64,000 nucleotides of DNA from Selaginella moellendorffii. Taxonomy: Eukaryota > Plantae > Lycopodiophyta. Positions within the stretch are counted from its first letter, which is position 1. Each line of letters opens with the position of its first letter. The position numbers and the translations under genes were made by a program. Below are positions 615 through 34,845 of the stretch, piece after piece. The DNA lies in NCBI RefSeq assembly GCF_000143415.4, contig NW_003314264.1:896624-960623 (forward strand). Reading direction: 5' to 3'. The notes beneath the pieces are model-generated. The model saw nothing but the letters and a program-made list of their open reading frames with translations, was not told the origin of the DNA and ran no database searches.

Positions 615-891
615 TAATCATTCACTGCAACTAAACCTCCTTGTGATAAACATATATTCCATATATCATTAGTTGCTTCCACAACATCACTAAATGTTAA
701 TCTATTGAGACTGCTGAACTCTTAAAGGCAATCTAAACTCCAACTAAAGGTATAAAGACAGACAAACTAGAAGAAAAGCTATACCACACTAAACTTATAC
801 ATCTACAATAGTCTCCACAAATCATTCCTTTATAAAATGTCCTAGTGCAACTTTGAAAGGATCTAGAGTAGTAAGAGTGGGTTTCTTTGTA
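615..891 (-). pseudogene. Pseudogene of the small secreted 6-Cys family (copy 1; no signal peptide, frameshifted, truncated)
   Basis: Manual minus-strand translation gives YKETHSYYSRSFQSCTRTFYKGMICGDYCRCISLVWYSFSSSLSV, then a stop/frameshift, then LTFSDVVEATNDIWNICLSQGGLVAVND. This is collinear with the 2925-3374 protein. Confidence 0.88.
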
Positions 892-2222
892 AGATACTCA
901 GAGATCAATGCTTGATCCTGTCAAGCATTTGAATCCACACAACTGATCATTGATTGCAATGGAATGCCACTTGATTCTAAATTCCACCATATTATACACA
1001 CATAAAAACATCTTTTATCCACAATATTATAAATAATTTGCTGCACATTACATGTAGTAACTCTTGGTTTGCTTAATAATAGTGTTATTCCTATTTAATA
1101 ATCAATAAATAAAGAATTATAAACATTTTTATAATTTATAAATACAATATTAATCTTATTAAATATCATAATATTTACACAGTTAGAATGAATTGTGCAA
1201 TTTTTGACAACTGATCCACAACCACCATCAAACCATTAGATGATAAAATAAACTAGAATATACTAGAAAGTGTTTAGAAAAGTTTCTAAATTATAAATAC
1301 AAGACTAATCTAAATAAACAACAATCATTAGATATTAGAATATTCTAGAATATTCAAGCATATTCTAGATATATCCAATAGTTTTGCTTAAGCAAACAAA
1401 AATACAGGAAATATTAGAAAGATACATTAATACAATTAATTTTTATTTTTGTTCTATTGTAGTGGCAAGACTTTATGGTATTTCAAATGGCAAGACAGAC
1501 ATAAAACTATCATAAAACTAATATGTTACTAATCAATACTATAAACTAAGATATCCTCATATGTCCATAAACAAAAGTTATAATCATTTTTAGTGCTCAA
1601 TGTAGTTAACATATACTTTCTAGTACTGAATTAAGTATGCTTCATAGATAATCATATCTAAAATAGTACATACAAGCATACATTCATATAATATGAATTC
1701 ATACCTTATGCTACATCTAGTGTTAACTAGCTTGAGCCATGATAAAGAGCTTATAAAGTATATAATCTCTTGCCAATATGGCAATAAAAGAAAAAGAACC
1801 TGTCAAAAAAAAGCTTTGCATACCTAGTGGTTAATAAATAGTTTTTGATACCCAAAGTCACATTTGTGATATTTGGGACAGGTATTGAAAGTTTCATCTT
1901 GTGGTACATGATAAAGTTGTCTCTTTGAAATATTTTAATGTAAATTTTAAAAAGTTACTAGTATCCAGTGGCAAGTTTGAGAAGAAAGAAATGCCTATCC
2001 TATAACTATAGTAAATTTTTAATGTAAAACTTTAATTTCATCAAATTAGTCATGAATTCAATCTGATTAAATCTTTAAATGGGATAATTACCCCTTCAAA
2101 CTCAATAAATAATTATGATTCAAAGGTTGTTGCAAAGTATTGAGACTTGAGATGTCTTAAAGAATTTTCTGTAAAGATGACTTATTCTCAACAACATCAT
2201 AGAGCAATTCAAACCAGATGCT
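850..2222. repeat. Left arm of a large inverted duplication (partner 3592-5515)
   Basis: Reverse complement of 3592-5515 throughout; for example 2100-2218 versus 3596-3720 are near-identical. The right arm has ~545 bp extra (about 4376-4922). Confidence 0.95.
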
Positions 2223-2432
2223 GCTCAAAATGTATGAAGGAAACTCCGTCCCAAGGATGTTCAAGAGAGTAAAAACTTGATTTCTAATAATCTTTCTTAT
2301 TGTAATTCATTTATAGATATGGGAGAATGCTGCCACCACTCTATGTGCCAATGTACAAATCATTCTTTCCATGATGATTTTACTCTTTTGAACATCCTCA
2401 TGATGGAGTTGCCTTCATACATTTTGAGCAGC
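2220..2432. repeat. Nested short inverted repeat (arms 2220-2274 and 2378-2432, ~100 bp loop)
   Basis: GCTGCTCAAAATGTATGAAGGAAACTCCGTCCCAAGGATGTTCAAGAGAGTAAAA versus the reverse complement of the right arm, GCTGCTCAAAATGTATGAAGGCAACTCCATCATGAGGATGTTCAAAAGAGTAAAA. Confidence 0.9.
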
Positions 2433-2544
2433 TGGGGTAAGACAAGCTGCAATAGTAGGAGCTGGGATAGGAGCAGCTGTAATAAGACGAGGTGGGGCAG
2501 GAGAGTTTTCAGCCAGGTTCTCTACTTGTTCCATTTAGTTTTCT

Positions 2545-2860
2545 TAATAGACAATAGGCCTAGATGCCTTGAACTTATAGTGTCACTACCACTGACTATA
2601 ACACTTGATCCAACACCTATTCGATGGCATGCCCAAGAGGAGCCTCATGTCATGGTCGGCAATGCTAGTGGTTTTTCCAAGGGCGGCTGCATAGATGACA
2701 CCACAAGGCTGTTCAATGTGATGCCAATAGCCATAATCACTGCTTGTGCAGACCATGACCTGGCCCGGGTCAATGACGTGTTTGATGGGTGTGAGCAAAT
2801 GCCCTCTATTTGCATGACACAGCAAGGTTGACAAGCCTCTTAGAGTAGGAACATTCTTCT
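2545..2860 (+). pseudogene. Degenerate PLS-class PPR fragment; CpG-decayed duplicate of 28835-29135
   Basis: Encodes GCIDDTTRLFNVMP. The nucleotide sequence is collinear with 28835-29135, differing mainly by CG>TG/CA. Confidence 0.8.
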
Positions 2861-2924
2861 TTATGGTCTCTCTAACAAGGCTAAGGTCTAGTTATCTATA
2901 TAAAATGGCATTTTAATTTAGAGA

Positions 2925-3374
2925 TTAAACATCACAACCAATTAAAATCGTTGATGTGTTTATACGAGAGTTTATCTTAAGAAGTTCATCTCTTGAATGT
3001 TCTACTCGAAAACGCATTGATCTATCATCTAGTGTAACTACACCTCCTGGATCATTATATGATAGACAAATGCTCCATATATCCCCAACTGCTTCTACAT
3101 AATCACTATATGTGAATTGGTGGGATTGCCTAACCTTGAGGAAACAACCTAAACTTCCAACTCGAGCAGTATAAATCCCTGGTACAGATAAATTAAAAGC
3201 AAATCTAGACCACACCAAACTCACACATCTGCAATAATCTTGATAATTTGTTGCTCTCTGGAATGTTCTAGTGCAACTTTGAAAGGATCCAGAAGAGTAA
3301 GAGTGGGTTTCTTTGTAATAAGAAAACAAAAATATAGTAATAAAAATAAACATAAGGAATTTTTGAGATTTCAT
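2925..3374 (-). CDS. Small secreted cysteine-containing protein of unknown family, 149 aa (copy 2, intact)
   Basis: Intronless ATG-to-TAA ORF with a hydrophobic N-terminus (MKSQKFLMFIFITIFLFSYYKETHS) and 6 Cys conserved with the 17449-17901 paralog (~56% identity in the mature region, manual count 70/124). TATA-like TTATAAA ~45 bp upstream. Confidence 0.88.
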   Translation of the reverse strand: MKSQKFLMFIFITIFLFSYYKETHSYSSGSFQSCTRTFQRATNYQDYCRCVSLVWSRFAFNLSVPGIYTARVGSLGCFLKVRQSHQFTYSDYVEAVGDIWSICLSYNDPGGVVTLDDRSMRFRVEHSRDELLKINSRINTSTILIGCDV

Positions 3375-3591
3375 ACCAAGCTCTTCTTTCTTCTTCCTCT
3401 CAATTCTTGCTTGTGGTGGGTTTATAAGTCAAATAAAAAGGACAAATTCTTGGCAACTTTCTATGGTTTTCTTGTATTTTATTTTCTTTTTTTCCTTCTT
3501 TGTTTTCTAATATATTTTAAATTATTATTAGACTTATTTATTGTAAAATAGTCATTTCGAAGATGTATTTCTAACCAATTAGAAAATTCAT

Positions 3592-5515
3592 AGCTTCTGG
3601 TTTGAATTGCTCTATGATGTTGTTGAGAATAAGTCACCTTTACAGAAAATTCTTTAAGACATCTCAAGTCTCAATACTTTGCAACAACCTTTGAATCATA
3701 ATTATTTATTGAGTTTGAAGGGGTAATTATCCCATTTAAAGATTTAATCAGATTGAATTCATGACTAATTTGATGAAATTAAAGTTTTTCATTAAAAATT
3801 TACTATAGTTATAGGATAGACATTTCTTTCTTCTCAAACTTGCCACTGGATACTAGTAACTTTTTAAAATTTACATTAAATATTTCAAAGAGACAACTTT
3901 ATCATGTACCACAAGATGAAACTTTCAATACCTGTCCCAAATATCACAAATGTGACTTTGGGTATCAAAACTATTTGTTAACCACTAGGTATGCAAAGCT
4001 TTTTTTATAGGTTTTTTTTTTTATTGCCATATTGGCAAGAGATTATATACTTTATAAGCTCTTTATCATGGCTCAAGCTAGCTAACACTAGATGAGCATA
4101 AGGTATGAATTCATATTATATGAATGTATGCTTGTATGTACTATTTTAGATATGATTATCTATGAAGCATACTTAATTCAGTACTAGAAAGTATATGTTA
4201 ACTACATTGAGCACTAAAAATGATTATAGCTTTTGTTTATGAACATATGAGCATATATTAGTTTATAGTATTGATTAGTAGCAACTTTCCATTGGTTTTA
4301 TGATAGTTGTATACCATTTGAAATATCATAAAGTCTTGCCACTACAATAGAAGAAAAATATAAATTAATTGTATTTGCCTCATAAGTACATATCACAATT
4401 ATGGAGAGTGTCAACATTTTAACATATCCACTATTGGTATTTTTTGGTCATTTAAAACAAATTAAAATCCATTTTAGTTGTGAATGACTTGATGGGGCTT
4501 TTTCCATAATCTAATACATGGTATTAGTATATACACTATGCATATAATTTTGTGACATAGTTTTTTCATCATATCCTCTGGCTTCTTCAGTTATTAAGGC
4601 ATTGATATAGTATATAATGAATATTAAACAATCCCATTAGCTTAATTTATCATCTTTAGACAAGTAGATTGGTTGCATTTAAGGCAGATTCATTATTATG
4701 ATATAAGACATTTTCCAACAGTATTTTCTAGTGAAAGATAGATTTTTCTGATGCGATTTTTGAATGTGAGGAGAGGTTGCAAAATTCCTTTGGAAAAACT
4801 ATGTCATATGTTATTTCTTGTGTGATTTACAAATTACATGGTGATGTTTATTTTGTGATGTTTGTTGAATCTAAGGTTATAAATTTGAGTTAATGTGGAT
4901 AGAGATAAGAAAACTTTATGAATATTAATGTATCTTTTCTAGTATTTCCTCTATTTTTTGTTTGCTTAAGCAAAACTGTAGGGGGAGTGGGATATATCTA
5001 GAATATGCTTAAATATTCTAGAATATTCTACAATTTAACTGTTGTTATTTCATTTATATTAATCTTGTATTTATAACTTAGAAACTTTCCTAAACACTTT
5101 CTAGTATATTCTAGGTTATTTTATCATCTAATGAATTGATGGTGGTTGTGGATCAGCTGTCAAAGATTGCACACTTCATTCTAACTATGGAAACAGTGTG
5201 ATATTTAAGATTAATATTGTATTTATAAATTATAAAAAATGTTTATAATTTTTAATTTATTGATTATTAAATAGGAATAACACTACTATTAAGCAAACCA
5301 AGTGTTACTACATGCAATACACAGCAAATTATTTATAATATTGTGGATAAAAGATGTTTTTATGTGTTTATGATACAGTGGAATTTAGAATCAAGTGGCA
5401 TTCCATAGTAATCAATGATCAATTGTGTGGATTCAAATGCTCAATAGGATCAAGTATTGATCTCTAAGTATTTTATGAAGAAACCCACTCTTAATCCTCT
5501 AGATCCTTTCTAAGT
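3592..5515. repeat. Right arm of the large inverted duplication; contains retroelement debris and ends inside a ~45-bp fragment of the secreted-protein family
   Basis: Reverse complement of 850-2222. Contains the Gypsy integrase-like peptide LMVVVDQLSKIAHFI (5136-5180) and GAAACCCACTCTTA...AGATCCTTTC (ETHS..SF) at ~5480-5510. Confidence 0.93.
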
Positions 5516-6498
5516 AAGGTTTTTTTATTTATACTCGCTTTTTGCCCTTGTCTACAAAGTAATGACAAACAAACAGAGATAAGAACATAAAGAAGAGAAG
5601 AAGAGAACAATAAAAAGAAAATAGAAGAGAACTTAGCCTTGAACTTTAAAGCGTGAGTAGGGATAAACATATATCATTTTTTCAACTCTACTTTGCATAA
5701 ATAGTTATAAGTAACAGAAAATATAGTTAATTCAATGCAAATGCATACACTAGTGAGTGCAACACGTCTAAGTGCTACTTATATACTATATAATTTTATA
5801 ATCATTTCTAACTAGTTCTTGCTTGTTTATAACAACTATTGCCTAGGTTGGGTTTTTCTTTTTTTGATGCTTAAGCTTAAGCATAACTCTATTTCATTTA
5901 ATCTTCCTTCTTTTGCTATGTTTGGGAAGATACACAAGATAAAAAATTTACCTTTTCATCACTCCCACACGACAAAGTTACTCTCTATCCTCAAGCAGTC
6001 GAATTCTCCAAATCCTAATCTAGGCTATTGAGTTTGCTCTTCATATTGATAAGCTCAATGCTTTGATACAAATCATCAAGTTCTTGATGTATATTCTGAT
6101 TTTCCTGGTCGAGCATTGCAATGCATTGGTTTTGGTGGTTGATGTGCTCTACATCAGTCCCATAACTCCATCCACTTTCTGGATGATTGTCTTGAGGTAG
6201 CTTAAGACTTGTATGTGGTATTTCATGTTTCCCTCATTTTTTACTAGCTGTATTGCTTATCAACTAACTACTTGCCTCCTCCCTTGATGTGTTGAGCAAA
6301 CTCCTTTATGAAGCTTCAGATTTCTAGCTTGCTTGGCTGATTTGTGGTTTTGTGAGTGAAAGTGTGGCTAGCCTTGACTTTGTAGTGTTGCTGTGGCATC
6401 TACTGCTACTATGGCTACCATGTCTCGCTAGATTGATTGGTTGAGAGTGTGTCACTGTCAAATGCATAAGTGGACTAAAGAAGACTAAGCCTGTACTC

Positions 6499-11820: not shown

Positions 11821-12479
11821 ACAGAACCTTGCTCTAGCCCCATGGCTAGAGCATCCAAAGGCAAAAGGTGGGGAGAGCACCCATGAGGCTCATGTAAGGC
11901 TATAGTGTTCCGAAATGTTATCCCAATGTCCCAAATTGTGGAAAGGAAAAAGGGTAATCCTTTAGTGTAGTGACCAAGGATACGGTCATATAGTGAGGAA
12001 GTTCCAAAGGACAATGGGATTTAGTGGTCAGGCCAATAGGCCTTGACCCAATAGTAATATTGGTGAACACAGCCATGGATAAAAAGGGATTTGGTGGGGA
12101 TTGAAAAAAGGATATTGAGGAAGGTTGTTCCCCATGTCTGCTAAAGATGCTAAGGAGTGGATCTGGGATGATCAGTCATGGATGGATGGCCTAGTCTTTA
12201 GGAGATGAGACTGTGATGTTGGTCATGTTGGATAACTAGTGTGACAAAGGTGAATAGGCAAGGCTTTAGCATAATGGGCTGATATGTTAATAGTACCTTT
12301 GGATGTCGGTCATGGGATTAGATATGTGGAGCACTTGGACCAAGTGCAAAGGTTGAGTAGTATGGATGCCATTTCCAAGGCTAATAAGCCCCAAGTCCTA
12401 AATTGGACTTATAGAGGTTATGAATGAGACTCCTCCAAGTAGTTAAAGATGTGGTTAAGTGATTAAAATAGAATGGAAA

Positions 12480-14300
12480 AATTAATCGCTTACACTTTCC
12501 TTCAGAAATCAAATGTTTAGGACATTTCTTATACAAAAGTCCCAAAAAAAATTCAAATAACAAATGTTATTTTTCATAGCGTATCTATCTTGATTAGGTA
12601 TGGTCCATCTTAAAAGACTTTTACTCCACAAATTTTATTGCCTATCAATCTAGATTCCGGATTGATCCAACATATATTAACCCAATTATTAGCTAGTGTA
12701 TTTCTGCATATGGGTATCCAAGATTTATTATCCTATAATAGGTTTTTTGCCTAAGATTGCATAAAATTTTAGCAATTGTTTAATAGGTAAAATTTTATAA
12801 ATCCTTTGCAAGTTATAATATTTAGGATTTGCATCTAACTTAGATAAGTAAATTATCTCTCTATCTAGGAAAAATCATGGTACTATTTTCTTTTTGTATA
12901 GGTAGCTCTATAGATATAAATTTTGCTTACACTATGTACCTACAAAGTAATCTAAGTGTATTATCACACCTTTTTTTATAATAGTAAAGGTACAAGGAGT
13001 TAAACTTTTGTATACCTTAAACAAAATATTATCAAGTATCTTACTTGATAATTCGTCAAGTTGTTTAAGCAATTTCATTAAATCTATCATTTCTTGGCTT
13101 AGTTGAGCATACAAAATAGTTTAATTTTTTCTTTTTTAAACTTTTGCCTAGTCACATAGAGTGAGGATCAACCAACTTCCAGTCTATAAGCAAAATGTAT
13201 CTTTTGATAGGTGTGGTGGATTGCTAATAAACATTCTTATTTTGTCTATCTTAATTCCCCCAATCAACTTTTATCAGAACTATAGAGGGTTATCAATCTT
13301 CAATCTTTTCACCTATGTGCATAGGAGGATCTTCCCTTTCTACTCATGCTTAATATGATTAAGATTAATTCAATGCAAAGGTCTTTGGTATATAAGAGTC
13401 AATTCTAGAGTAGTTTATTTGTTTCACAATGGTTTTACCCTTTGGCTTACAATCAACCTTGCCCTTACAATTGAAATTAGAAAGAGTGGTTTATTATTCT
13501 TGGCAAATTTTAGGCAAACCTCTTTTAAATAGATCAACATTAGGGATTAATTTGAACAGGGCGTGGAGATTATTCTGTGAAATTACTCTGCGAAATTAAT
13601 ATAAAGGTTAAATTATCTAGCACATGATAGCTTATTCTAGATCAATTTTCTTGTGGAATGACGTTAGGTAGTATTTCAAACATATAATAACTAATTCATG
13701 GAAGACTTTATTTTATATCTAGATAAAAATTGTTTTTCAAGGCAAATTTCTCTCTAACCTCTTCACCAACAAGTAGTAATGGTCAATACAAATCTCTACT
13801 AAATCTTGTATGATAAATTCTTGAGCTTTAAAATAAATTTCAAAATTTTTGGAAGTATATATAACTATTTCACCTTTTTAGACAAAACCCCTCTAAACTT
13901 ATTCTATTTTTTTAGAGATTAAAGTGATGGTAGTAGTGTCTCCAAAACTGATGCCTAAACCTAATAGCAAACTCTATAACTTTTTATTCTGCTTTTATGG
14001 TGTGAAGCTTCTCATGTGCTTCGTCTAACAAAATTTTATTAGTGTATATAGTGATTTATGCATTCCAAATGTAGGTGGAAATTGAGTTATAACTCTTACT
14101 AGAGTACTTGTATAATTTTGCCTATATTGAAAATATTCACTCTCTTATATGAAGACATACATACAACTATGGATTATATCTCATAAATGATGGTCCACAC
14201 CTTGCAAAGGGTGTTTCACTAGTGAGTGTTACCCCTATCAATTGAGCGTCACTCAACTAGTTTGAAGGGTAAATTTTCACACTTATTTATTTGTATATTT
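12480..14300 (-). mobile_element. Heavily decayed Ty1/copia pol remnant
   Basis: The minus strand gives traces of copia RT motifs (ARLIV...KG...IDSY..KTFA near 13375-13470; YPYAE...LIY near 12660-12720) broken by stops and frameshifts. Confidence 0.45.
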
Positions 14301-15294
14301 GCTCTTTGTGTATGCCTCATTACAGGGGATATAAGGCATGTTTCATGTGATTGCCCTTGATTCCTTTTTATGGGGCTAGATGTGATATAAGTGCTCTCAA
14401 AATCTATAAAAAAAGTGACACCTTTCACACTAAGCAATGTTTGTAATCTCAAATGTTTGAGTAAGCTCTTTATATGTAGGAGATAAGCCTTGACTAATTC
14501 ACTTAGTTATACTAGGCATAGAGTGGTTCAAATAGTTAGAGTGGTTTCTAATAATCACTTTCAAATTTTTGATTCATGAGTCTTATTCAAGTCTCATAAA
14601 ATCCTGCAATATGCATAGAAGACTTAAACTTTGGACAAATCTACTTTTAAACCATGTTTAAATAGTTGTCCAAACTAAAGAAGCTTGGATTAAAGCCTTG
14701 AATCAACATAATGTTCTAAGGGTATACTCCTTACTTCTAAGATCTCTTTAGCACCAATGCCATCACCATAACCTAGATTTCTCAAGAATTTGCTCTAAAA
14801 CCCCAAAAAAAACCAAAGAACCAATAATCCTTCTCAATAGAGTTGCCAAATGTTGAAAAAAGGAGCCTCTCAATGGTGGGGAGAATATTATTATATTATA
14901 AAATCCAGCTTAAACATCTCTTTTGTATGAATTCCTTGCCATAGAAAATGGGGAAGAAGGGGAATATACTTTGTGCCCTAGCATCTCTTTATGCCCTAAG
15001 AATATTCTGATAGTGGAATATTCTAAGGCTTAAAGCTCTATACCCTTCTAAAATTAATGTTTTGGCTTTACATTAGATTTGGAAGATGATTGAAAAAAAG
15101 TGTTAGTGCAATATAGATATTCGAAAATATAGTTTTTGTGATCAAGTTTTATGTGTTCATTTTGCATTTTGCAAATGTCAATATTATATATATGGGCATA
15201 ATATTCAACACTTAGGTCATGAGAATTTATGTTAAAGTGAACTTATGTAAAGTTGGTCATGAGAATTTATGTTAAGGTGAACTTATGTAAAGTT

Positions 15295-15890
15295 GTAGGT
15301 AGAAGAAAGTTAGTTGAGTCTTAAAAAAATTACATTTCTAGAATGAAAGTCATTCTTTTTTAAGATGGAAATTTTTCTACAAAATTTCTAAGGCTTTTGC
15401 AATGGTTGATATATTAATTATTTTGCCACTCAATTCATTTTTGTGTACTATTGCAAATTAGTGAAGGGGTTAGAGTTGACTTCGATTACTTTAGATCTTA
15501 GTAGATAGTTTATATAATGTGGCCTAAAAAGCATGTTAACTTTTGGGGCTAAAGTAACAACTAGAATGAGTCTAAAGTTAACATAGAAGGGTGGATATTT
15601 TTCTTTTCTAGTGTAGTGCACCCTAGGCTATATTTAATCCATAGTGTTGAATTGTATTGAGTCTTGGACATGATGATTCACTCTTTGGTGATTTATTATC
15701 TGTAGCTGAGTATTATTAAAGGATTAATCTTAAATATTGAATAAAGTATCTTTAACATTGTTTAATTTGGTTGCTATAGAGTTTTGAGTGGTGATTCGCT
15801 CTTGCTTTCTTTTAACTTTGTTTTAGTGTTGATTATATTGAAATGATACCTTGATATTGACATTATTGATGTTGGGAATGGAGTGAAATA
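15295..15890 (+). mobile_element. Old internally deleted fragment of the family-B LTR element interior
   Basis: Collinear with 55365-55660 (e.g. TAGTGAAGGGGTTAGAGTTGACTTCG) and then 56350-56620 (GAGTTTTGAGTGGTGATTC). Confidence 0.75.
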
Positions 15891-16139
15891 AAATAATTCT
15901 CCATATGCATATTGCAGAAGTTATATTTTCCATCTATAATGGTTTAGATAATTGAGGATTAATTGTGCATATTGGAGATTAACATTTTGTTTCACTAGTC
16001 TTGATAAAAATGGTGTTGATAGTTTAGATATAAGTTCACACAACATCTTAATGTGTAGCGAGATAAACTTTTCATTGAAAAGCTTCCTCTTCTGCAAAAT
16101 AAAAAGAAAGATCTCAAGTCATGAAACCATGACAATAAT

Positions 16140-16445
16140 ATGACCTTATCTGACCAGGAAGCAGCAGTACATACTTGAGAAGCAATTGGGATAAACTTGA
16201 CTTGTCCCTAGGACAGCATCCATTTAGCAAGACCTTGATGTGCATTCCACCTAGTTGCACTGCAGCCTATGAAGAGAAACTTTGCCATGAAAGATGCCCA
16301 ATGTGGGCATATGCAATCACCATTGTAGTCCAGGTCACCATGTCCCTCTTCTATAGAGAATCAAAGGTTTTTCTATCCTTAGCAACACAATTCATTGCAA
16401 AAGGCTTATAACAAGATTTTCCATAATAAGACATTGGGATCCTGA
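16140..16445 (-). pseudogene. PLS-class PPR remnant
   Basis: Minus-strand translation PNVLLWKILL*AFA...FDSL*KRDMVTWTTMVIAYAHIGHL, with in-frame stops. Confidence 0.7.
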
Positions 16446-17448
16446 ATTGAGTGAAAGACCTTGATTGCCTCCACTCTTAACTTTACGAGTTAAAGATTTT
16501 AGTCTAAAAGTGTTATATTCATTACTTTAGCCACTATGTTATAGATCATTTTCAGCTCCACTTTAGGATATCTTACAATTATGTTTTTTTTTTCATACAT
16601 AAAAACAGCATTTTAAATTCACAAGTCCAACCATAATAAAAATAATTATTTTTTGATGATGAATTATCACATTCTTTTTCAAAATATCGATTTAAAATAA
16701 AATATAAAAGCATTTCATAAAATTTAAATATCATAATATCTGACTTTATATTTTTACTTAATTTTTAAATAATATATTTTAAAAGTAACATTGAGTCTTC
16801 TATTCATATATGTGTTAGTGTGCATAGAGAAGAACTTCATCTGTGTGGAGTCCACGATGGCTCTACACATAAATAACCTTGTGGAGAAACAATCATAATT
16901 GCATCATCAATAATTTGTGGATGATACTCATAGATAGCACACATAAACATTACAATAATCCTAATCAACTCAAATGTATTAAGTCCACTCAAGTCAACAG
17001 CATAAAGTCTCTCTCCTTAAAACCATCATAATGGTTTACATGACCAAAATGTTTGTTTAGAAGAAAACCAGATTTAGAAGAAAGTATTATTTTAGGTTAT
17101 TTTATAAGTAGGATAAATCTGACTGAATGATTTGGCTGTTACAAGCTGCAGAAGAAGACATCCAAACCTAGATATTGTATGAATCTTAGTGCTTATTTTC
17201 AATGGAAAATAATTCAAGCTACTTATATATTTATATTAAATCTACAAAATGGAAATTAGACTTTAGTGTGAGTCTTTATAATAGTTGTGTATATCCAGTA
17301 GTGTCCTTTAAACATATATACTACTGATAGCTCACTGATATGACATTGATAATGACATCATAGTAATACTATGAAAGAAGATTGTCATTACTTCAGAAGC
17401 TTCATTTCTTAGAATTTAATACTATTTTTATTATAGAAATTAACATAA

Positions 17449-17901
17449 TTAAATATTAATATCACATGAAAAGAGAACCATCAATGATTTTGTATATGCG
17501 TCTAACTCTAATAGCTCATCTCTTGAATGCTCCACTCGTAAGCACATTGACCCATCATGTAGTCTAACAACACCTCCTGAGTCATTATTTACAAGACATA
17601 TATTCCATATGTTCATTGTAGCTTCTAGAAAGTCATTAAATGTTAATCCATGATATTGCCTAACCACAAAGAAACAACCTAAACTTCCAACTTGGGCAGT
17701 ATAAATACCTGGTGTAAAGCTAAATGCAAAATTATACCACACTTGGCTTATACATGAACAATAGCTATCATAATTTGTTCTTATGTGAAATGTGGTAATG
17801 CAATTTTGAAAGGATCCAACAGAGTAACAGTGAGTCTCTTTCCAATAAGTGAAAATAATCATAACAGTAAGCATAATTATAAGAGATAAATTAAATTTCA
17901 T
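17449..17901 (-). CDS. Small secreted cysteine-containing protein of unknown family, 150 aa (copy 3, intact)
   Basis: Intronless ORF with a signal-peptide-like N-terminus ending KETHC. Shares the motifs FQxC, YCxC, PGIYTAxVGSLGCF, IWxICL, GGVVxL, RVEHSRDELL and C-terminal CD with 2925-3374. Confidence 0.88.
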   Translation of the reverse strand: MKFNLSLIIMLTVMIIFTYWKETHCYSVGSFQNCITTFHIRTNYDSYCSCISQVWYNFAFSFTPGIYTAQVGSLGCFFVVRQYHGLTFNDFLEATMNIWNICLVNNDSGGVVRLHDGSMCLRVEHSRDELLELDAYTKSLMVLFSCDINI

Positions 17902-20316
17902 AGCTGTAAAAATGATTGAAGCTTATAGCTATAAAAATGACCAAAACTTAAAATTATTAAAGCTTATAAATTCTAAGAAATAAGACAAAGTTGTTGACAA
18001 AGTTATATCATGATTCAAAAAGTTTTTTTTTTCTACTCTATTTTTGTTTCTTCCTTTCCCTTTCTATTTTTAAATTTTTTTAAATACTTCAGCATCACTA
18101 ATTGTGATATTTTGAGTCCTATATTGCAAATTTTTTGTCAAAAGTAGATGATATCTAGATTTTATAAGACTTTACATATTGTGAGCTTGTTGGTATTTGA
18201 TAATAGCTCTATTTTGGAACAGTAGTAGCTTGATAAAACTGAATTAGAGCATTATCAATCATAAAGTAAAATATTTATTAGAGAGTTAAGAAGAAAGAAG
18301 TGAATATATTCATTTCACATAACTATATATAACACAAAATCATGTTATTTGCTAAGCTTTCCAATAGAAGTGTGTAACACTTATTCTAAACGGTCCTCAT
18401 TTTTAACATGAAAAAGAGTCTCCTTCATAAAGAGTTTTAAAAGAGTTTTTTTTCCAAGATACAATTCTATTTGAGAAAGTTTGTATGAGTTGAGAAAATG
18501 AAGCAAACAAAGACCTTAGTTGGCCTTATAATGAGGCCTAGATTTACTCTTGTCTTGTAGAACCCTTATAATTTTTCTCTCAATGTAATCCCTTGTATTA
18601 GTGCGTGTAATTTTGATTATATGAAATCCACATACTCAAGTATATTTATTAGGTTTTATTCATGTAAGATACATCTTCACTCATCAGTCATAATACTATA
18701 GAGGCTAAAGCCTTTAGGTAATGCTTTGTTTAGTTTTCAAAATGGTGCTTTTTTATTTTTATTTCTTCATTCTTTTTTAGATCTAGATCTATGTTAGTTT
18801 TTCACCAAATCTAGAATTGTAGTTATTAGATTAGTTTTTCCTTTTCAATCTCTATGACATTCTCTTCTTCTACCATGTTATGCCATTATTGATGAAGAAG
18901 TATTGTCATTTGATGTTGCTATTGTTGTTCCATTGAATTAAGCTTTTGGTGTTATAGGGCATAATCATATTAGTGTTACACCCATTCTTCATGTGTTGCC
19001 ATGACCAACTTCCATGGGACTTGATTATATAGTGTTATTCACCTCTTGCTAATATGGAGTGTGATTGTGACATCAATTAGAGAATTATAGATAATGCAAT
19101 TCAGTTTTTGGAGAATGTTCAAAGATCAAGCTTATGGGAAGATGATGTATATAATTTAATGGATTCTTGACAATGATGGGAAATTTGATTACTTTAGAAA
19201 TAACTATGAGGACAAATTATAGATTTTGCAAAGTAGATGTCAATCCTTCAATCTATCATATAATCTTTTTTTATTGCCTTCTACTCTTTTGCAACCTTTT
19301 TTTATATCCTAGCTTGAACCACTTCCTTATGTTTTTTTTATTTTTTCCTTATTTGTAACATTTTTTTCTCCTTGTATGTTGATAATTTGTGACTCTTATA
19401 TTTCTCATTCTTAATCTGGTGTTGAATTTAGTGTTTCTATTGTCCTTATACTAATTTGAATACTAAACATATATGTGAAGCAACAGAATTTGTTTTGTTT
19501 TGTTAGTAAAGTCTTTGATCAATTCTCATATTGAGTATTCCTTTGTTCCAAGGGTTGAGTCACTTTTGCCAAAGTTTCAAACTAAGTATATTTCTTTGGT
19601 TATGAGTGCTATTGAATCTCTTTACCTTACCACTGCTACTAAGGAATTTTTTAATTAATTTTCTTATCTCAAATATTAAATTGTGTGTTGAAGAAGTTGA
19701 GCAATAAAAGTCTTTTCCTTATCTTCTAGTGGCTAAAATATTTTATAACATAATATCCCTTATCCAACCTTTCTACTTGGATGGAGTCTCTTATAATAGT
19801 AGATTCTTTATTATCTAAGCTTTATACACATTTCCTTCTTCTTATTTCCCTATTTTCCCATTGACAATAGCTAAAAATTACTCTTTTGATATTTCTTTAT
19901 CCACTTTTTCTTCTTCTATAACATTTCTTCCTTAATATTTTTAATTTTCTCTTCTTTGCTCTGACATTTTAAACTTTTTTTTCTTCAGAGGAAGGGGTAG
20001 AGGGGACAAATAAAAGTCTAACCCCAATGATGGAGTAAGGACAAGCAAATGTGACAGTTAAACAAGGATAAATGATATGGATTGTGGAGTGAGGATTTAT
20101 AATAAATCTGAAGTATATAAAAACATCTAACCCAATGTAGTGAGGCCAAAAAAATGTGATAGTGAAATATAAATTGTAAAGTAAGGATAAGCATAGTAAA
20201 TATAAATAAAGCCAATGCTTCAAAACTTTTTCTCTATTTTTTTCTTAGGGTTAAGGAGGATATGGAGAACAAACGAAGTGAGTCTAACCTCCTATATGCA
20301 ATGCTAAATGAAAATT

Positions 20317-20520
20317 GAAAACTCTTGAATTTAAAATTTTTGAGATTCAAATTTAAAGACACTTAACCCCAAGTATCCCAAGACCTTAACTAATTAAAAA
20401 AAGGGTGAATTAAACCCTTTTCCTCTATATTTAAACTTCTATATATCATCTTTTAAGTTATTTTCTAAGACTCTTAACTAATTAGAAAAGGGGGTGCATT
20501 ATTGTTCATGGGTCCTTTAT
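20317..20520 (-). mobile_element. Degenerate fragment of the Cassandra-like LTR
   Basis: CTTAACCCCAAGTATCCCAAGACCTTAAC and GAAAAGGGGGTGCATTATTGTTCATGGG match the LTRs at 8822-9414. Confidence 0.7.
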
Positions 20521-21351
20521 AATCACCTAATAGATATCTAGCTTATTGTCATCACCTTTTCATCTTCTGAAAGGGAAAATGCTTTTATATATATTATAAT
20601 AAACAAAGGCTTGCAGCCATCAAATCATAGGCCTAGGAGAGGATCAGTATATGGTCAAAAGAAATTTTTTATAAATGTTATACTTGGCCAATAGAAGACT
20701 AGTACATTGGCTAAGAGGACAAATGCAATTGATTAGATTGTATAGTTTTGGGGCGTTTTTTTCTATTGACCTTGAGGAGTCACTACTAGGATCATAAATT
20801 GTCATCATACTCTGCCTCCACTTCAGGTTTGATAATAAGCTTGGACTTTCTCTCTGGATTAATCTAAGCAAACAGTAATCACCAACTCTAGCCACTAGTG
20901 GAATTCAAGGCAAGCATGCCCTTGTGCACAAGGATTTTGTACACAAGCCCAAGCAGCTTCCTCTCTATTTCCAGTGAAGACTGTAGAAAAATAGTCCTTG
21001 AATTGTTTTTAAACAGGAGTTTAACATCTTTACCAAGTATTTGTTTTAAATTTTAGTACACTCTGCATTCCCAGTCAGATTTCTCTAGCAGCATCTCTTG
21101 GACATTCCAGCCTTAGAAGCAAGCCACGATCCTAAGCCATGCTCAGCAACTTCAGTAAGTTTATACTTTTTAGAGCTAGGAACAAAGACAAAAAGTTGTT
21201 AGGGTGTGGTCATGGCTGTATTGGGAGCTCAACAGTGAAAGAAGGTGGGGGAAGGAAGCAGCTTGATTTTGCACCATCAATGAGCAGCCATTTTAGCTTC
21301 TGTTTATTCTCTTTAATGATCAAAGATGGAGTAGGAGAATTAGTATCGAAG

Positions 21352-22495
21352 TGTCGCGAATGTGACTTCAGGTATCGAAAGTTATCTGTCGGCTAGTCCT
21401 TATGGACACTCTTACCTTACTGCCATGACGGCAGGAGGTCAGTACTGCTGGTTCCCTTTATTGGCCCCTCTTGTCCAAGTGTTACTAAACTAGACTTAGC
21501 ATCTGTACTTGGCCGGATGAGCATAAGGACGGAATTCCTAAGTGTCTATTTGGCCAAGCATACTTGGCCTGGCTTTTTAGTTCTCTTTTGCTCTGTCTTG
21601 CACTGGCTTGGCAAGAACTCTCGCGTATTGAGACTAGTCCCTCAATATCGCTATATGATAGCTTACCGTGTCTGCCAAACACCCTTGCTATCAACCCTTT
21701 GTGTTAGTCTCAATTCATCCCAGATGCTATTTATGGAAAGTGTCCAGATTTGCTCATTTGGCATATTTGCGGAATGTAGAGATTGTCCTAAACACAATGG
21801 TGTTCGTCCCATGTCCAAATTCGCAATCTAGGGACATTCCACATTTAGTAAGTTTTGAGCTTGTCCCAGATACTAACTCCAGATACTAAGGGAGGCTTGG
21901 GGTGAAAGCCCAAAGCGTGTGTTCCTCAAGGGGGGGGGGCTATGGGGGGTTCCAAATGTATAGTAGGGATAGTGGGTAAATCGGGCATGGCTGACCAACC
22001 TGAGGCATAGTGTAGCTCCCGCTTGCATGCTTGTCTTTGTTTTGCGTCCGGCTTGGGTCTAAGCCCAAGTTCCATTCCATGCTAGTTGGTGGAGTACACA
22101 TATCCTCGTGTTAGGCCACCGGTATGCCGAAATAGCACCAGACTCCATTTGGCTCCGTTTTGCGTGCTAGTCCTGGCATTGGGATGCTGGTTACTCTAGG
22201 ATTGTTCCAAGTCGCTCCGGGCTCCTGTCCCTTCGCTCCTTGGGTTGTATGCTCCGGAGTTGCTCAGTGGTTCAGTTCCATCACTCCTTGGCTCCATGCT
22301 TGGGAGTTTGGCACCGTTCCTTCGTTCAGTGGCCCAAGGCCCTGAACCTTGGGTTCCACACCACTGTCCTTTGGACACGTGGCATGTGACACGTGGCATC
22401 TGTCATGTGGCACAAAGAGGGTTTAGGTTCCGCTTCGTGGTATTATCCTATGGTAAATCACCATAAGATAAAGGGTAAAAACCACGTCCGCTACA
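21352..22495 (+). mobile_element. Solo LTR of family B (~1.14 kb)
   Basis: TGTCGCGAATGTGACTTCAGG...CCACGTCCGCTACA aligns over its full length with 52872-54022. No PBS or PPT in the flanks; flanks read ..TCGAAG|LTR|TTCGAAG.. Confidence 0.9.
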
Positions 22496-23325
22496 TTCGA
22501 AGCTTCCTGACAACAAAGCTTTGATGAACTTGATATTGGGTATAATAAGTGAACTTTTTATTTCAATTTCAATTTTGGATATATTATCATATTTAGATTA
22601 ATCTTGTGTTTATAAATTTGAAATAATTTCATCTATTTATAATTTTCCCACCAAGTATATTCTAACATATTCCACCATTTGGCATAGTATTCTCTGATTC
22701 ATGATCTTAAGCATCCCTGGCGCCGGAATCAGACGCTTCTCTTCGATTTCCATGGCAATGTCGTCTCCAGAAGGAAATCTCACAGTATTGTGTTCGGGAT
22801 CCAGGAATCCGGGGCCCGGGATCACGGTAGAGCCTTCGTCCGTCAGGATTGCGAGGAAGAATGTCAAGGACAAGGAATTAAATATAGCTTAGATTCTCCC
22901 CAAATTGATTTTCAATTGGATCCTTATGTCATCCCAAAGTTTGTTTGTGTGCCAACTGCGTAAAGTTCTATGGGGTAGAGTTGCCTTGAAGAGAGTCCCC
23001 CGATCGATCCTTCCTCGAGCCCAGCACACCCTGTACCAAGCTCCTTCCTTCCGTGCGCTGGGTAGTCAGCATCCGCCTGGAGCTTTGTAGCACCTGCGCC
23101 CTAGCTGTTGCTCGAGTATGATCGAAGGCGCCTAAAGCGTGATCAGCTAAGTGCTCAAGCAGCTGAATACCTACTCAATAATAGCGCAAGCGCAGCAATT
23201 TTGAAAGGTTCATTAAAAATTGAAATATAAATTTATAAACCTAAGTTGGACGAAATTACTCCTCAAACTTTTATTCAAATAATATATACTAAGTACTTCT
23301 AATTTGTAAATGCCTTCATTTTTAC

Positions 23326-28168: not shown

Positions 28169-28169
28169 C

Positions 28170-28833
28170 GCAATTCACACACTTTGTGTTGACGGTGATA
28201 GTGCTTTGCTCCACTCAAATCCGCCTTGCATCCTTACGCCTACACAGTGGTGCTTGAGCTCCAGGGGAATTTGCTCGGGGCCCTCGCTAGCGTGTCTTCC
28301 AAGTACGTCTTCACACCCAGATTCAGACCGATTCAAGAGTTTGCCTCAGAAATCCTCCCTTCTCATACCGTCAGCGAAGTTCCTGGGATCCATCTCCAGC
28401 CGCCCAGACAGTCGTCTCCGCTGCTCCTGAAACAACCTTGGATCCTGGCCGCTTCCCGGAACAAGACTTCCACTCATGTTTGCCAAAGGAAGAATCGTTG
28501 CTGCCGCTGTTCCTGGAAAGTCTTGCGATCCATATACTAGTGGCTGAGCGGCCTCTAGAGCTTCTCCCTGTCTCCCGACTCCTCTCCTCCAAGTCCTCGA
28601 AAGTCTAGAGTTGAGATCCCGTGACTTCCTGGCATGAAATGTTGCTGGTGTGGTTGGAATAGACGATGAGAAACGTTGTTGACGCTGTGGAGGTTCCCAG
28701 AGGAAGACTGTAAGATCGGCTTGAGAAAACCAGGAACTAGCTGAGACATCTTTGATCGTTGTCCAGCGTCATGGGACACTATCAGTGGCGGCCATGTTGA
28801 GCTGCCAGCTGCTGATAATTCTTCCACTCCCAC
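28170..28833 (-). pseudogene. Truncated, frameshifted SBP-box (SPL8-like) transcription factor fragment
   Basis: IGLNLGVKTY (compare SPL IGLNLGGRTYF), RANSPGAQAPLC, then GCKADLSGAKHYHRQHKVCEL, the first half of the SBP zinc-binding domain. The rest of the domain is absent. Confidence 0.82.
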
Positions 28834-28834
28834 T

Positions 28835-29258
28835 ATGATAGACGATGAGGCCCTGGATGCCTTGAACTTATAGTGTCACTGCCGCCGACTATGACGCTTG
28901 ATCCACCACCTGTTCGATGGCATGCCCGAGAGGAGCCTCGTGTAGTGGTTGGCGATGCTAATGGTGTTTGCAAACTGCGGCTGCATAGATGACGCCACAA
29001 GGCTGTTCGATGCCATGCCGATAGCCATGATCACCGCTTGTGCCGACCGCGACCTGGCCCGAGCCAAGGACGCGTTTGACGGGTGTTTGCACGACATGGC
29101 AAGGTTGACGAGCCTCCCCGAGCAGGACATGTTCTCTTGGGATGCCCTCTTAGCCCCACAGCAAGCATTTCTCTCTGTCAGCGTGCTGGATCGAGGTCTG
29201 CATTACTGGGCTGGTGTCTGCGGTGCTCAAGGCTGAAAAGCTAGTGCTGTGAGATGGC
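28835..29258 (+). pseudogene. PLS-class PPR remnant (CpG-rich source of the copies at 2545-2860 and 268-331)
   Basis: LFDGMPERSLV*WLAMLMVFANCGCIDDATRLFDAMP...LPEQDMFSWDALL. Confidence 0.8.
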
Positions 29259-32200
29259 CTTGCCTGGGCCCTGGGGGTCCTAACCCCAAGAAGCATCACT
29301 CCTCGTGGGTCCATTTTTTTCCCCATTCTAAAACCAACATTAGTCACTAACAAAACTTGCTTCTTGGGCAATGAACAAGATCAAAACACTAGCGAGCTGA
29401 GATAAGAGGGGTACTCATCTTCATATTGAATCTCCAGGGCCTTCTCTACTTCCAAACACGTCACCTTGCTCTGCCGTGGAGGTTGATGGGCTCGAGTCGG
29501 AACCAGCCATTGATCTTCTCCATGGCCAAGATCCGCCTGACATCGACATGTGTTCTGGAGGGATGGAGGTTGATGGACTCGAGTGAGGGATCTGGATAAA
29601 TCGAAGAACAAGGCAACTGGATGTTTTCGCAAAAATCTCTGCCAGTGGTCTTTTTATGTATGAAGCTCGAACAGGGACTTGAGCAATCCAACCAGATCCA
29701 AAAAAAATCTGGGTGATATATATAGAAAGTCTAGATAAAATTGCCATCATAAGCTGGAGGTGGACCAAATTCCACTTAATGAATATTTCCTCAATTAACA
29801 CTTACATAGAGAACTTTAATATTTGCTGTTGAGAAACAAAGAAGAAGAAAAAGTTATTTGAACTAGAAAAATTAGAAATGGGATCATCCAACAAGCTCGT
29901 GTGTCTTTGGCTGACAATAAGTATGTGTTGGGCTTGTCGTCGTCGGCGTCCAAAGCCTGTGTTCTTGATTCCTCCGAGATGCTAAGTCTTGGCTGGGCCA
30001 GTCGGCATTTAGTCTCCTTGCAAAATCTTCGATTTCCCTGAATCTTAATCATTGTATGTCACCTTGAACGAAACGAGCGCCTGAAAATTGGACTGGAGAT
30101 GAAGAACCTTGCTTTTTGAGCTCTAGAGACGAGAACAATGCTCTCAAAGGAAAAAAATGTGGAAGAAGGGAGTACACACGCGCATACCTCCTTTGAGAAG
30201 CTGTCCTGAAGAAGGGGATGTGATTCTCTGGAATGCCATGATCTCAGCATATGCTCTGAAACATTTGAGTGTTTAGTTAACAAATAAAGTTGGTTTTAGA
30301 ATGCAAACCTGGAGGCTAAGTTGCGAATGTTGTGGTTCCACTCGTTTCACGCACGAATCAATGGCATTGCTACTCCATCACCATCACCAGATGGAGAATA
30401 GCCTTCATTGCCCTCCCAAAGCTGTGATGTCAATTCATATAGCGGTGGCGTGGCAGGGAAGACTATAGTTCAAATTTGCACATTGATATACTTGCCTTCT
30501 GCAGCTCCATCCCAAGAACGTAGAGCTTGCTGCCCAGAACCTGGCTCCCCATGTCTTTAGTGATACAAGAATATCAAATGTATTCTTACAATGTATGGCA
30601 TAGCTCCACCACATTATCAAGAAGGTGATTAACAAAGTGAGTTGGTATTGATAAAATTTCCTCAACTCAGAGATCCATGGATGAAAGAAGATTGAGTTGG
30701 TAAGTAACCTCAAAAGTATGAAAGAGCATAAACTTAAATATTGACTTTTTAAATTGTTACAAGAGCAAGTGGTGATAACAAAGAAGACAAATCTTGGTTG
30801 GTAATTTGTCATCTTGGGTATAAGAAAGGACTAATTAATATGATTAAAGAGGATAAAAGCCATAATTAACAAAGAATAAAAACGAAGAGTGTTAAGAATT
30901 GTTATAAATAAACTTATTAGAAAGAAGAAACTCAATCATGTTGATGAGAAATATTACTTTTAAGTGTTTAAATAATATACTTTAATTGCCCATCATCTTG
31001 AGGATGATAAGAAGTTGACAACTTACCTTTGATGTGGAGGAAAGAAAGAAATTAGTGCTAAAAGGTGAAAATAAAATTAAAGATTTTGATCACTAATAAT
31101 ATTATCTAGCAATCCATAAAAGCAAAAAATGTCATTTTGAAAAACCAATCAACCACAATAAAGACAGTATCAATCCTCAAGAATACAGAAGATTAATAAA
31201 GAAGTTTATAGAGGCAGACATCCAAAGCCCAAAAGTAAAAAGAAGTGGCTAGAGAAAATTAGATAGAGCATTTCAAGGCGTTTTAGACTGCTAATAAATG
31301 AATGAAGCTATCTATTTCATAAATGTTTGTGACAAGAAGGTTTAGAGATCAACCACTAAGAGAAAAATAAATATGTATGTGAGTCCAAACAAAATCCACT
31401 CTCAAATTGTTATTTAGGCTCCTTTGTAGGTATTCTTCTATGTGATCTAAAATGTATTATTGATCACGATCAAGAGAGATCATTCGTAAAAAATGTATAT
31501 TTACTAGCACTTGATTTTTCTAAAATTTTATTTTCAAGGTGGACAGAAAGAGATTTTAGCAAAAGCATATTAGGCTACAAAAGGTAAGGCAAGATCAAAA
31601 ACTTTAATCATGTATAATTATGAGAATAAACATAATTAAAACCATGATCACTTCCCAATTATATAGGCATGAAAAGTGCCCTCTTATTGTGCTCTTGTCC
31701 AATTAAAATGAACCAAAGTTGAAAACAATTAAAATGTAGGTGATATCATCAAATTGTTTGCTATAGTAACCAGCATTCTTTGTATAATCATTAGGTAGTT
31801 TATTTAGTACAAGTAAACCTCAATTTGTCATACCTAGAGGTGACTTCAATTTGCTGCATTAGCCAAATTCTATTGATTATATTGCCTTGGACTTATTGTA
31901 GAAGAATTAACTAAGATATAGTCTAAGGTGGCCCCATGATCATAGACTTTGCCCATCCAGATTCATGATCCACTCATTGTAACTTGGATTTTAGACTAGT
32001 GGCTAACCTCTGGATTGATGGAATCCATTAGCTCATTGATAAAAGGTCAAATGGAGGAAGCAAGGAGAGGTGAACTTTGTTGTGAGGAGAGAAGCTCCTC
32101 CAAGCTTCTTTTGCTTGAAAGAGGCTGCAAATGCTGAAAATATAGATAGTGGGTTGATAATGAATTTGGATTAGAGTCCATCAAATAATATATTTCTAGA

Positions 32201-32350
32201 ACGACAAATTTAATAATCAGAAACTACGATTTTAATTTTCAAATAATAATTTAGAAAAAACAAAAGAGATGAAACTTTTGTCAACAACTTTGTCCCGGGA
32301 CAAAGTTATATAAATTTAAGAATTTATAAACCCATTAAATCTCTATAGGC

Positions 32351-32787
32351 ATGGAATCTCAAAAATCCCATATATTAGTGTTTATTGCTATGGTTGTTTT
32401 TTCTTTTTGCATTAAAAAGACTCCTCTATACACTTCCAAAGGTGCATTACAACATTCCAAAGAGGAACAAATTATCAAGACTATTGTAGGTGTGTGAACC
32501 TAGTTTGGTATAGATTTGCTTTTGGTTTATCTATGCCAGGATATTATACAGCTCGAGTTGGAAGTTTGGGTTGTTTTTTCAGGGTTAGGCAATCCCATGA
32601 ATTTATATTTAGGGATTTCATAGAAGCAGTTAGTGATATATGGGATATATGTTTATTTTATAATAACCCAGGAGGTATAATTGCGCTAAGTGATATCTCT
32701 TTATGAGTAGATTATTCAAGAGATGAGCTTAGGGAGACAAACTCTTCTATAAATATGTCAATGGTATTGTTTAATTGTAATATTTAA
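32351..32787 (+). pseudogene. Full-length pseudogene of the small secreted 6-Cys family (copy 4)
   Basis: Signal MESQKSHILVFIAMVVFSF, frameshift near 32430, then FQRCITTFQRGTNYQDYCRCVNLVWYRFAFGLSMPGYYTARVGSLGCFFRVRQSHE...DIWDICL..NNPGG..., TGA at 32704-32706 where the paralogs have Arg (CGA), then VDYSRDEL...FNCNI*. Confidence 0.9.
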
Positions 32788-34693: not shown

Positions 34694-34845
34694 AATGCCG
34701 GATCAGATTTTAGGGTTCTTTGGTATGGGTTTAGGGCTTTTGCGCCAAAACTCTAGGGCAACGCAAACTATCAGGAACACGAGAATGCCCAGTCTCGTTC
34801 GTCCGCATTTTGATTCGGATCGAGGGCCTCGATGATCAGCGCTCT

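Follow-up and report, generated by a model that had tools for sequence, protein, structure and literature searches.

The 64,000-nucleotide stretch of Selaginella moellendorffii DNA analyzed here (contig NW_003314264.1, positions 896,624 to 960,623; hereafter the window) carries several related copies of a short intronless open reading frame (ORF) with a signal-peptide-like start, and the question it raises is whether these ORFs are genes at all and, if so, what kind of protein they encode and where it came from. An initial annotation, made from the letters alone, had described a local family of secreted six-cysteine proteins and suggested a KP4/Ecp2-like fold and a foreign origin; we confirm its observation of the copies and find partial support for its interpretation. 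The answer that we favor, and hold to be probable, is that these are real, unannotated nuclear genes forming a lineage-restricted family of small secreted proteins with a DUF26/Gnk2-type fold, perhaps of a glycan-binding or defense type, reshaped by local duplication and decay. The family members in the window and the duplication that surrounds some of them are as follows.

About 581-897, minus strand: copy D, a degenerate pseudogene in two frames.
850-2222, no strand assigned: first arm of an inverted segmental duplication, holding D's 5' end and upstream DNA.
2925-3374, minus strand: gene A, an intact intronless ORF of 149 aa, with a signal-peptide-like N-terminus (residues 1-25) and a mature domain of 124 aa with six Cys.
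3592-5515, no strand assigned: second arm of the inverted segmental duplication, with an insertion at about 4376-4922; it begins 218 bp upstream of A's ATG.
5478-5515, plus strand: 38-bp fragment from the 5' end of a family member's coding region, on the border of the inverted copy of the DNA upstream of D.
17449-17901, minus strand: gene B, an intact intronless ORF of 150 aa.
32351-32787, plus strand: gene C, null allele of the window haplotype, located by tblastn and split across two frames.

The ORF list, tblastn searches and translations agree on four copies and a fragment at the positions first noted. Genes A and B are intact paralogues, 53% identical over their full length (BLASTP E 7e-59) and 57% identical in the mature part. 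Six conserved Cys are present in A, B and C, as are the motifs PG(I/Y)YTA.VGSLGCF and (H/Y)SRDEL; the six-Cys description holds for these three, but the B precursor has eight Cys and a member found elsewhere in the genome (E, below) has five. Copy D, which tblastn with A and B places at 617-891 on the minus strand in two frames, carries multiple stops, frameshifts and internal deletions, one of which removes the PGIYTA region, and has neither a start codon nor a C-terminal part. Both D and C had been taken for pseudogenes. While D is dead, C, whose translations show a frameshift and an in-frame stop, is broken only in the window haplotype and has an intact allele in a second haplotype. The fragment, first put at about 45 bp and matched by tblastn at 5471-5515 (15 codons), is there, but as the 38-bp edge of the inverted segmental duplication, whose arms pair 850-1432 with 5515-4923 (88%) and 1429-2222 with 4375-3592 (95%). 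A family hidden Markov model (HMM) run over all six-frame pieces of the window recovered no further copy. The picture of a local, intronless, AT-rich family with signal-peptide-like N-termini that turns over by duplication and loss is supported in each of these respects.

We did not accept ORF length as evidence of coding, as shuffled versions of the AT-rich islands that hold the copies yield open frames of up to 170 codons. What argues for real genes is that homology stops with the coding sequence (CDS), that the ratio of nonsynonymous to synonymous divergence (dN/dS) is below one, and that a fold is predicted with confidence. DNA similarity among the paralogues ends at the CDS borders, an observation that also bears on whether the ORFs are cargo of a transposable element (TE) or of an integrated (giant) virus. 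The DNA is AT-rich and repeat-rich, the ORFs are intronless, and fragments of long terminal repeat (LTR) elements lie between the copies, all of which would suit such cargo; yet no shared terminal repeats or TE domains surround the copies, the observed duplications are local and segmental, 2.9 million viral contigs contain no relative, and viral structures reach a template-modeling (TM) score of at most 0.31. We regard this explanation as barely credible. The description of the surroundings as TE-dense was borne out in part, with LTR-element fragments at 6.5, 15.3-15.9 and 21.3-22.5 kb and nested elements at 49.8-60.3 kb.

We next turn to selective constraint. Between A and B, dS is 0.6-0.86 and dN/dS ranges from 0.36 (maximum likelihood) to 0.52 (NG86). 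Its bootstrap 95% interval is 0.31-0.83, and not one of 500 replicates is as high as 1. The ratio is 0.37 in the fold core and about 1.2 in the signal peptide. Thus the comparison of intact copies that the initial annotation had proposed gives a value clearly below one, not near it.

Allelic data, which cover B and C, came from the second haplotype (GL377614.1), reached through the neighboring genes. Gene B is intact there and differs at 5 nt and 4 aa; of the amino-acid changes, three fall in the signal peptide and the fourth in the tail, which leaves the fold core unchanged. Its CDS differs at 5 of 453 positions and has no indels, compared with 146 of 2898 elsewhere in its island (Fisher p 2.6e-5). 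Gene C in haplotype 2 is an intact 145-aa ORF (locus L003, 4668-5105), whereas the window allele has a 10-bp deletion between 32419 and 32420, which shifts the frame at the junction of signal peptide and mature part, and a TGA at 32704-32706 where haplotype 2 has CAA and paralogue A has CGA. Three CA/TG allelic doublets occur in the C CDS, the stop codon among them, which suggests that CpGs there decayed on one strand in the window haplotype and on the other strand in haplotype 2. What had been called a pseudogene is therefore a segregating null allele.

Several features of the DNA around these genes were observed in passing. Fragments with PPR-like (pentatricopeptide repeat) translations, e.g. 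CIDDATRLFDAMP, occupy 2547-2850 and 28838-29127 (ORFs 2277-2831 and 28949-29236) and are 79% identical; a Pfam scan of the first gave no hit, and the two are likely to be PPR pseudogene debris, one piece of which adjoins gene A. Just beyond B, the segment 14826-16426 aligns to L004 17094-21363 in the opposite orientation to the remaining haplotype-2 alignment, which reflects either a haplotype inversion or rearranged repeat copies. At about 29020-37245 (L005 1-5674), a public 929-aa model spans the gene C locus into the PPR gene, for which the haplotype-2 model is 779 aa; the longer one is probably an over-extended gene model on the window haplotype.

Is the family known from elsewhere? Scaffold GL377568.1 (GCA_000143415.2) is 100% identical to window positions 13326-34688, and its public annotation calls no gene at B; the exact A and B sequences are absent from a collection of 15 billion proteins. 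An exhaustive HMMER scan of 1.84 billion cluster representatives gave one true hit (P0001, E 1.6e-6). This hit corresponds to the C-terminal part of an S. moellendorffii gene model, EFJ30363.1/SELMODRAFT_409220, and constitutes family member E. The second hit, P0002, was rejected as a low-complexity artefact made of repeats of PGQYTEQVGAYRVLSM. Member E is a stand-alone contiguous ORF of 143-153 aa at 12125-12586 of locus L001 (scaffold GL377575.1). It shares 30-34% identity with A, B and C, begins with a signal peptide of its own and contains five Cys. Degraded copies F and G lie upstream of it and derive from a tandem segmental duplication of about 6.2 kb. The public model itself (554 aa; L001 10001-12944) is chimeric, joining a kinase-like fragment and unrelated sequence to E, and a predicted intron in it replaces E's C-terminus.

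Beyond these members, sequence searches were silent. Pfam scans of A, B, the C part and E named no family even at E 10, and searches of the PDB by sequence returned noise, both for the single protein (HIV protease and Pizza proteins, E about 0.1 or above) and for the profile (SAGA subunits, E 0.16). A word-indexed homology search found nothing with A alone or with a 10-row profile, and scans of metagenome and viral contigs with narrow patterns, a weak negative, found no relative. As far as these sequence comparisons reach, the family appears to be known so far only from S. moellendorffii. Nor did any known plant family match in the Pfam, PDB and HMMER searches.

To ask what the proteins look like, we modeled the mature domain with AlphaFold2 on an alignment (A4) of the mature domain, E and the fragments; a run with the signal peptide included and three rows had reached a pLDDT (predicted local distance difference test) of only 46. 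The mature-domain model has a pLDDT of 76, near 88 in the core, and a predicted TM score of 0.73, with three of the five models in agreement. Its elements are beta1 (8-10), alpha1 (19-35), beta2 (41-47), beta3 (50-56), alpha2 (63-77), beta4 (85-89) and beta5 (95-101), followed by a disordered tail (105-120). This beta-alpha-beta-beta-alpha-beta-beta sandwich has the secondary-structure order that had been read from the sequence by eye.

The closest solved structures are plant DUF26 domains. Foldseek against the PDB placed the tandem-DUF26 ectodomains of PDLP5 and PDLP8 first (probability 1.0, E 1e-3 to 2e-2), followed by the Lyophyllum decastes lectin LDL (0.99) and ginkbilobin-2 (Gnk2; 0.96). 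An exhaustive comparison with 48,161 representative chains by VIA-align, an aligner independent of Foldseek, gave Z 9.4 for PDLP8 (root-mean-square deviation (rmsd) 2.6 Å, 94 aa), 8.8 for PDLP5, 8.4 for Gnk2 (96 aa), 8.2 for LDL (87/94 residues, 2.6 Å) and 7.5 for the fungal lectin Y3. Zt-KP4 followed at Z 5.9-6.3 (91-95 residues, rmsd 3.8 Å) and UmV-KP4 at Z 4.3 (rmsd 4.3 Å); the intervening and lower rows are unrelated structures with rmsd >9 Å. A second-look alignment gave the same ranking, and a shape search of the ESM atlas put a PF01657 cluster first (TM 0.59). No match came from the viral structure library. In the predicted model, as in the DUF26 fold, both helices pack against the same face of an antiparallel sheet of five strands, and the model agrees likewise with the fold of the L. 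decastes lectin (4NDS). Structure-based identity to DUF26 domains is 12-21%. The expectation of a KP4/Ecp2-like fold, to be checked with AlphaFold and Foldseek, consequently holds at the level of the superfamily but not of the nearest relative, as the closest solved structures are plant DUF26/Gnk2 and LDL (Z 8.2-9.4).

The N-termini have the features of signal peptides, as judged from their sequence: a charged n-region, a hydrophobic core of 12-13 residues (Kyte-Doolittle 2.5-3.1) and small residues at -3/-1, with a conserved YSS after the predicted cleavage site; N-glycosylation sequons are also present. In mature A, the Cys stand at 9 (beta1), 23 and 25 (alpha1), 52 (beta3), 78 (alpha2 end) and 122 (tail), that is, with spacing C-X13-C-X-C and later C-X25-C, and none lies in the first turns of alpha2. 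The tail Cys comes after the conserved SRDELL motif. Placed by secondary-structure element, Cys9 and Cys78 would occupy the elements of the DUF26 C1-C5 bridge, and Cys52 lies in the element of C2; there are no counterparts of C3, C4 and C6 save for an extra Cys95 in B (beta5). By element and spacing, Cys23/25 and Cys52 would be located like the helix-to-strand bridge of Zt-KP4-1, the 29 residues from Cys23 to Cys52 being equal to those from Cys60 to Cys89 in that protein.

This spacing is among the observations that would fit a foreign source, in which horizontal transfer from a fungus brought in an effector or toxin gene of the Hce2/Ecp2 or KP4 type, which was then amplified locally. The H1-beta4 bridge of Zt-KP4-1 spans the same number of residues (PMC12382754), the ORFs lack introns, two fungal lectins, LDL and Y3, come close to DUF26 in structural score, and mosses offer a precedent with their fungus-derived KP4 genes (Guan et al. 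2023, cited in PMC12513842 and PMC12382754). A protein-language-model search also led from A (0.88, 189/256 shared features) and B (0.83, 178) to fungal small secreted clusters, some with Hce2. Scores below 0.9 are leads only in that search, and the lead was not reproduced across the family, since E led to unnamed bacterial clusters (0.84). Neither the HMMER scan (E 1e-3, 1.84 billion) nor the word-indexed profile (E<=1) returned a fungal protein, scans for PF14856 and for PF09044 (four conserved Cys, three Gly and two aromatic motifs) had no hit in A, B, the C part or E, and plant DUF26 outranks both Zt-KP4 (Z about 6) and KP4 (Z 4.3). Horizontal transfer thus stands unsupported, with no fungal, viral or metagenomic sequence relative at the HMMER level.

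Composition is explained by the local mutational regime. GC content at third codon positions (GC3) is 0.22-0.25 in A, B and C, whereas the PPR gene and the ribosomal-L1-domain gene next to them have 0.75 and 0.80, respectively; observed/expected CpG is 0.07-0.20 in the AT-rich islands and 0.83 in genic DNA. Between haplotypes, the islands (12000-20500 and 30000-34000 against L003/L004) diverge by 3-4.5% compared with 1.0% for genic DNA, and 69-77% of the island differences are transitions, mostly C/T changes at CpA and CpT and at the few CpGs still left. Per available site, C/T differences amount to about 40% at CG, 12.5% at CA, 10.7% at CT and 6% at CC, compared with 0.8-1.9% in the genic part, a pattern that suggests methylation-type cytosine decay in all contexts. 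Member E, in contrast, has a GC3 of 0.50 and lies in DNA of 42% GC with normal CpG content. Because composition follows location in this way, the AT-richness of A, B and C is no argument for a foreign origin: these islands are CpG-depleted and hypermutate from C to T. Taking these points together, we judge fungal acquisition to be very unlikely.

The same islands raise the question of whether the fold assignment is right but the window copies are functionless relics, silenced in heterochromatin, with A and B intact merely because there has been too little time for them to decay. The copies sit in CpG-exhausted DNA whose mutation is 3-4 times faster than that of genic DNA, both D and the fragment are dead, C has a null allele in one haplotype, ORFs of such length arise by chance, and annotation pipelines found no gene support here. 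On the other side, the split between A and B is old (dS 0.6-0.86) and yet its dN/dS is clearly below one, and nowhere in its island do the haplotypes diverge less than in the indel-free CDS of B. An exact 15-mer is also kept upstream of B and C amid flanks that are otherwise unalignable. The upstream elements are:

17984-17998, minus strand: 15-mer GTCAACAACTTTGTC, 83-97 nt upstream of B's ATG in gene orientation.
32280-32294, plus strand: 15-mer GTCAACAACTTTGTC, 57-71 nt upstream of C's ATG in gene orientation.
3421-3426, minus strand: TATAAA, about 50 nt upstream of A's ATG, inside TTATAAACCCA.

The 15-mer has only these two exact copies in the window and is kept at B in haplotype 2; it is a candidate shared cis-element. 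We dropped a reading of it as a W-box, as its reverse strand has TTGACA and not TTGAC[C/T]. TTATAAACCCA is found upstream of C as well, which is weak evidence given that such motifs are common in AT-rich DNA. A scan for sigma-70 promoters and terminators gave nothing above chance and is irrelevant for a plant gene.

Several results weigh against our preferred reading, some of them equally in favor of relics. Samples of about 9 million reads from each of three S. moellendorffii RNA-seq runs placed no reads on A or D; this check covered 500-5700 and hence these two copies, used no control gene and drew on unknown tissues. No indexed RNA run holds the locus. Partial matches (13-49 per run) did occur on a 40-nt purine-rich stretch of A's leader at 3379-3418, and because both ends of these reads continue into unrelated sequence we assign them to another transcript with a shared low-complexity motif. 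Allelic dN/dS in B is about 1 on its 5 changes, and the low divergence of B is the low end of a gradient that includes the 3' flank. The fold model was built on only 9 rows, drawn from about 4 independent sequences, and two of its five models failed. The Cys count is odd both in mature B (7) and in E (5). The searches made gave no sequence-level link to DUF26 or any other family, on account of which homology, as opposed to convergence on the fold, is not established. Finally, function is assigned by analogy, and even PDLP5, itself a genuine DUF26 protein, did not bind any of the sugars tried (PMC6368629). Current activity of the window copies is unproven; nonetheless, we consider the relic explanation unlikely and retain the reading of real, unannotated genes as the probable one.

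On that reading, the mature protein would be a disulfide-stabilized alpha/beta sandwich of about 14 kDa (beta1-alpha1-beta2-beta3-alpha2-beta4-beta5) with the fold of DUF26/Gnk2, LDL and Y3 and, more distantly, of Hce2/KP4 killer-toxin-like proteins. The copies, the class of fold, the constraint, the states of the alleles and the mutational regime are shown by the results above, whereas location and activity are inferred. The proteins would enter the secretory pathway, be cleaved before the conserved YSS, and act outside the cell on microbes; there, by analogy with Gnk2-like antifungal and defense lectins, they might bind a glycan or other microbial surface component. The family grows by local tandem and inverted segmental duplication, and members are lost to indels and C-to-T decay, since most copies sit in AT-rich, CpG-exhausted and probably methylated islands.

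A bolder extension of our reading can be drawn. The AT-rich, C-to-T hypermutating, repeat-rich islands might form a "second-speed" compartment, at once cradle and grave of unannotated, intronless, secreted lectin-fold families, and the family itself might be a structural intermediate between DUF26 and Hce2/LDL. Some fungal pathogens have AT-isochore effector compartments that offer a parallel. We consider this extension quite unlikely as it stands. If it were true, an intermediate with a DUF26-like beta1-alpha2 bridge and an Hce2-like alpha1-beta3 bridge would bear on the origin of the land-plant DUF26. In lycophytes, single-domain secreted forms and the first DUF26 kinases coexist. DUF26 is among the largest receptor and secreted-protein domain families of land plants (PMC6368629).

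The remainder of the window holds ordinary plant genes (ARID, PPR, FGAM synthase and an L1-domain gene) and Ty3 remnants. At 45800-60300, nested LTR retrotransposons (49.8-60.3 kb), with a Ty3-type RNase H at 49353-49715, come after the L1-domain gene. In haplotype 2 (L002 12600-15300), the next gene after the L1-domain gene is a DUF674 gene, at a distance of about 1.5 kb or less, and the LTR cluster is probably a large hemizygous TE insertion. Repeated elements at 21350-22497, 52869-54334 and 58640-60275 carry a conserved ORF (…SLLGSMLGSLAPFLRSVAQGPEP…HVAQRGFRFRF…), which is likely part of LTR elements.

A family that shares a fold with DUF26, has rewired Cys, and is missed by both Pfam and annotation implies that fold diversity in early vascular plants is under-counted, and it offers a concrete object with which to ask how DUF26, the LDL/Y3 lectins and Hce2/KP4 are related. 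The gene C alleles (CGA in the paralogue, TGA in one haplotype, CAA in the other) provide a clean case from nature of a gene killed by cytosine decay in heterochromatin-like DNA. Should the proteins prove to bind glycans or inhibit fungi, they would provide new antifungal lectin scaffolds; should the copies prove to be silent relics, they would still record turnover in a defense-type family.

Among known systems, the KP4 genes of mosses resemble our family in that a non-seed plant carries a small secreted protein of the KP4 superfamily. As described in the papers that cite them, they are recognizable PF09044 members with clear fungal relatives, unlike the spikemoss family, for which no fungal relative was detected and whose structure is nearer to that of DUF26. 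Hce2/Ecp2 (PF14856; Zt-KP4-1, 8ACX) and KP4 (PF09044; UmV-KP4, 1KPT) belong to the same structural superfamily, in that HCE2, KP4 and plant PF01657 proteins fall within one KP4 structural classification (PMC12382754). PF14856 is characterized by three conserved Cys and a W/F/Y motif, and Zt-KP4-1 carries, besides its H1-beta4 bridge (Cys60-Cys89), a beta2-beta7 disulfide (PMC12382754). Its pair of Cys from helix 1 to the hairpin strand has a spacing identical to that of our family (29 residues), but the fit of Hce2/KP4 is clearly weaker (rmsd 3.8-4.3 Å), Pfam gives no hits, the numbers of Cys and the bridges differ (two in Zt-KP4-1, five in KP4), and these families are fungal or viral.

The fungal lectins LDL (L. 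decastes, 4NDS) and Y3 (Coprinus comatus, 5V6I) match the fold nearly as well as DUF26 and are likewise small, secreted and disulfide-bonded. They differ from our family in lacking sequence similarity to it and in belonging to another host kingdom. LDL and Y3 have one bridge in common with DUF26 (PMC6368629), and the spikemoss proteins would similarly share one DUF26-type bridge.

DUF26/Gnk2 (PF01657; ginkbilobin-2, cysteine-rich repeat secretory proteins, and the ectodomains of PDLPs and CRKs) provides the nearest comparison. DUF26 is plant-specific by sequence, present in S. moellendorffii and structurally similar to LDL and Y3, and has the motif C-8X-C-2X-C and the bridges C1-C5, C2-C3 and C4-C6 (PMC6368629). 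Our family departs from it in having no PF01657 match at E 10, in lacking C-8X-C-2X-C and any Cys at the start of alpha2, with two Cys in alpha1 (C-X-C) and one in the tail instead, and in its unannotated, AT-rich genes found only in S. moellendorffii. The Cys in beta1, at the end of alpha2 and in beta3 are shared by location (C1, C5 and C2, respectively). The spikemoss proteins are, in addition, single-domain like the single-domain cysteine-rich repeat secretory proteins (sdCRRSPs), about 105-125 aa long, predicted here to be secreted, and presumed to form three disulfides. They have the same sandwich and the same order of elements, and DUF26/Gnk2 domains are their best structural matches, superposing over 94-96 of about 100 core residues at 2.6-2.9 Å.

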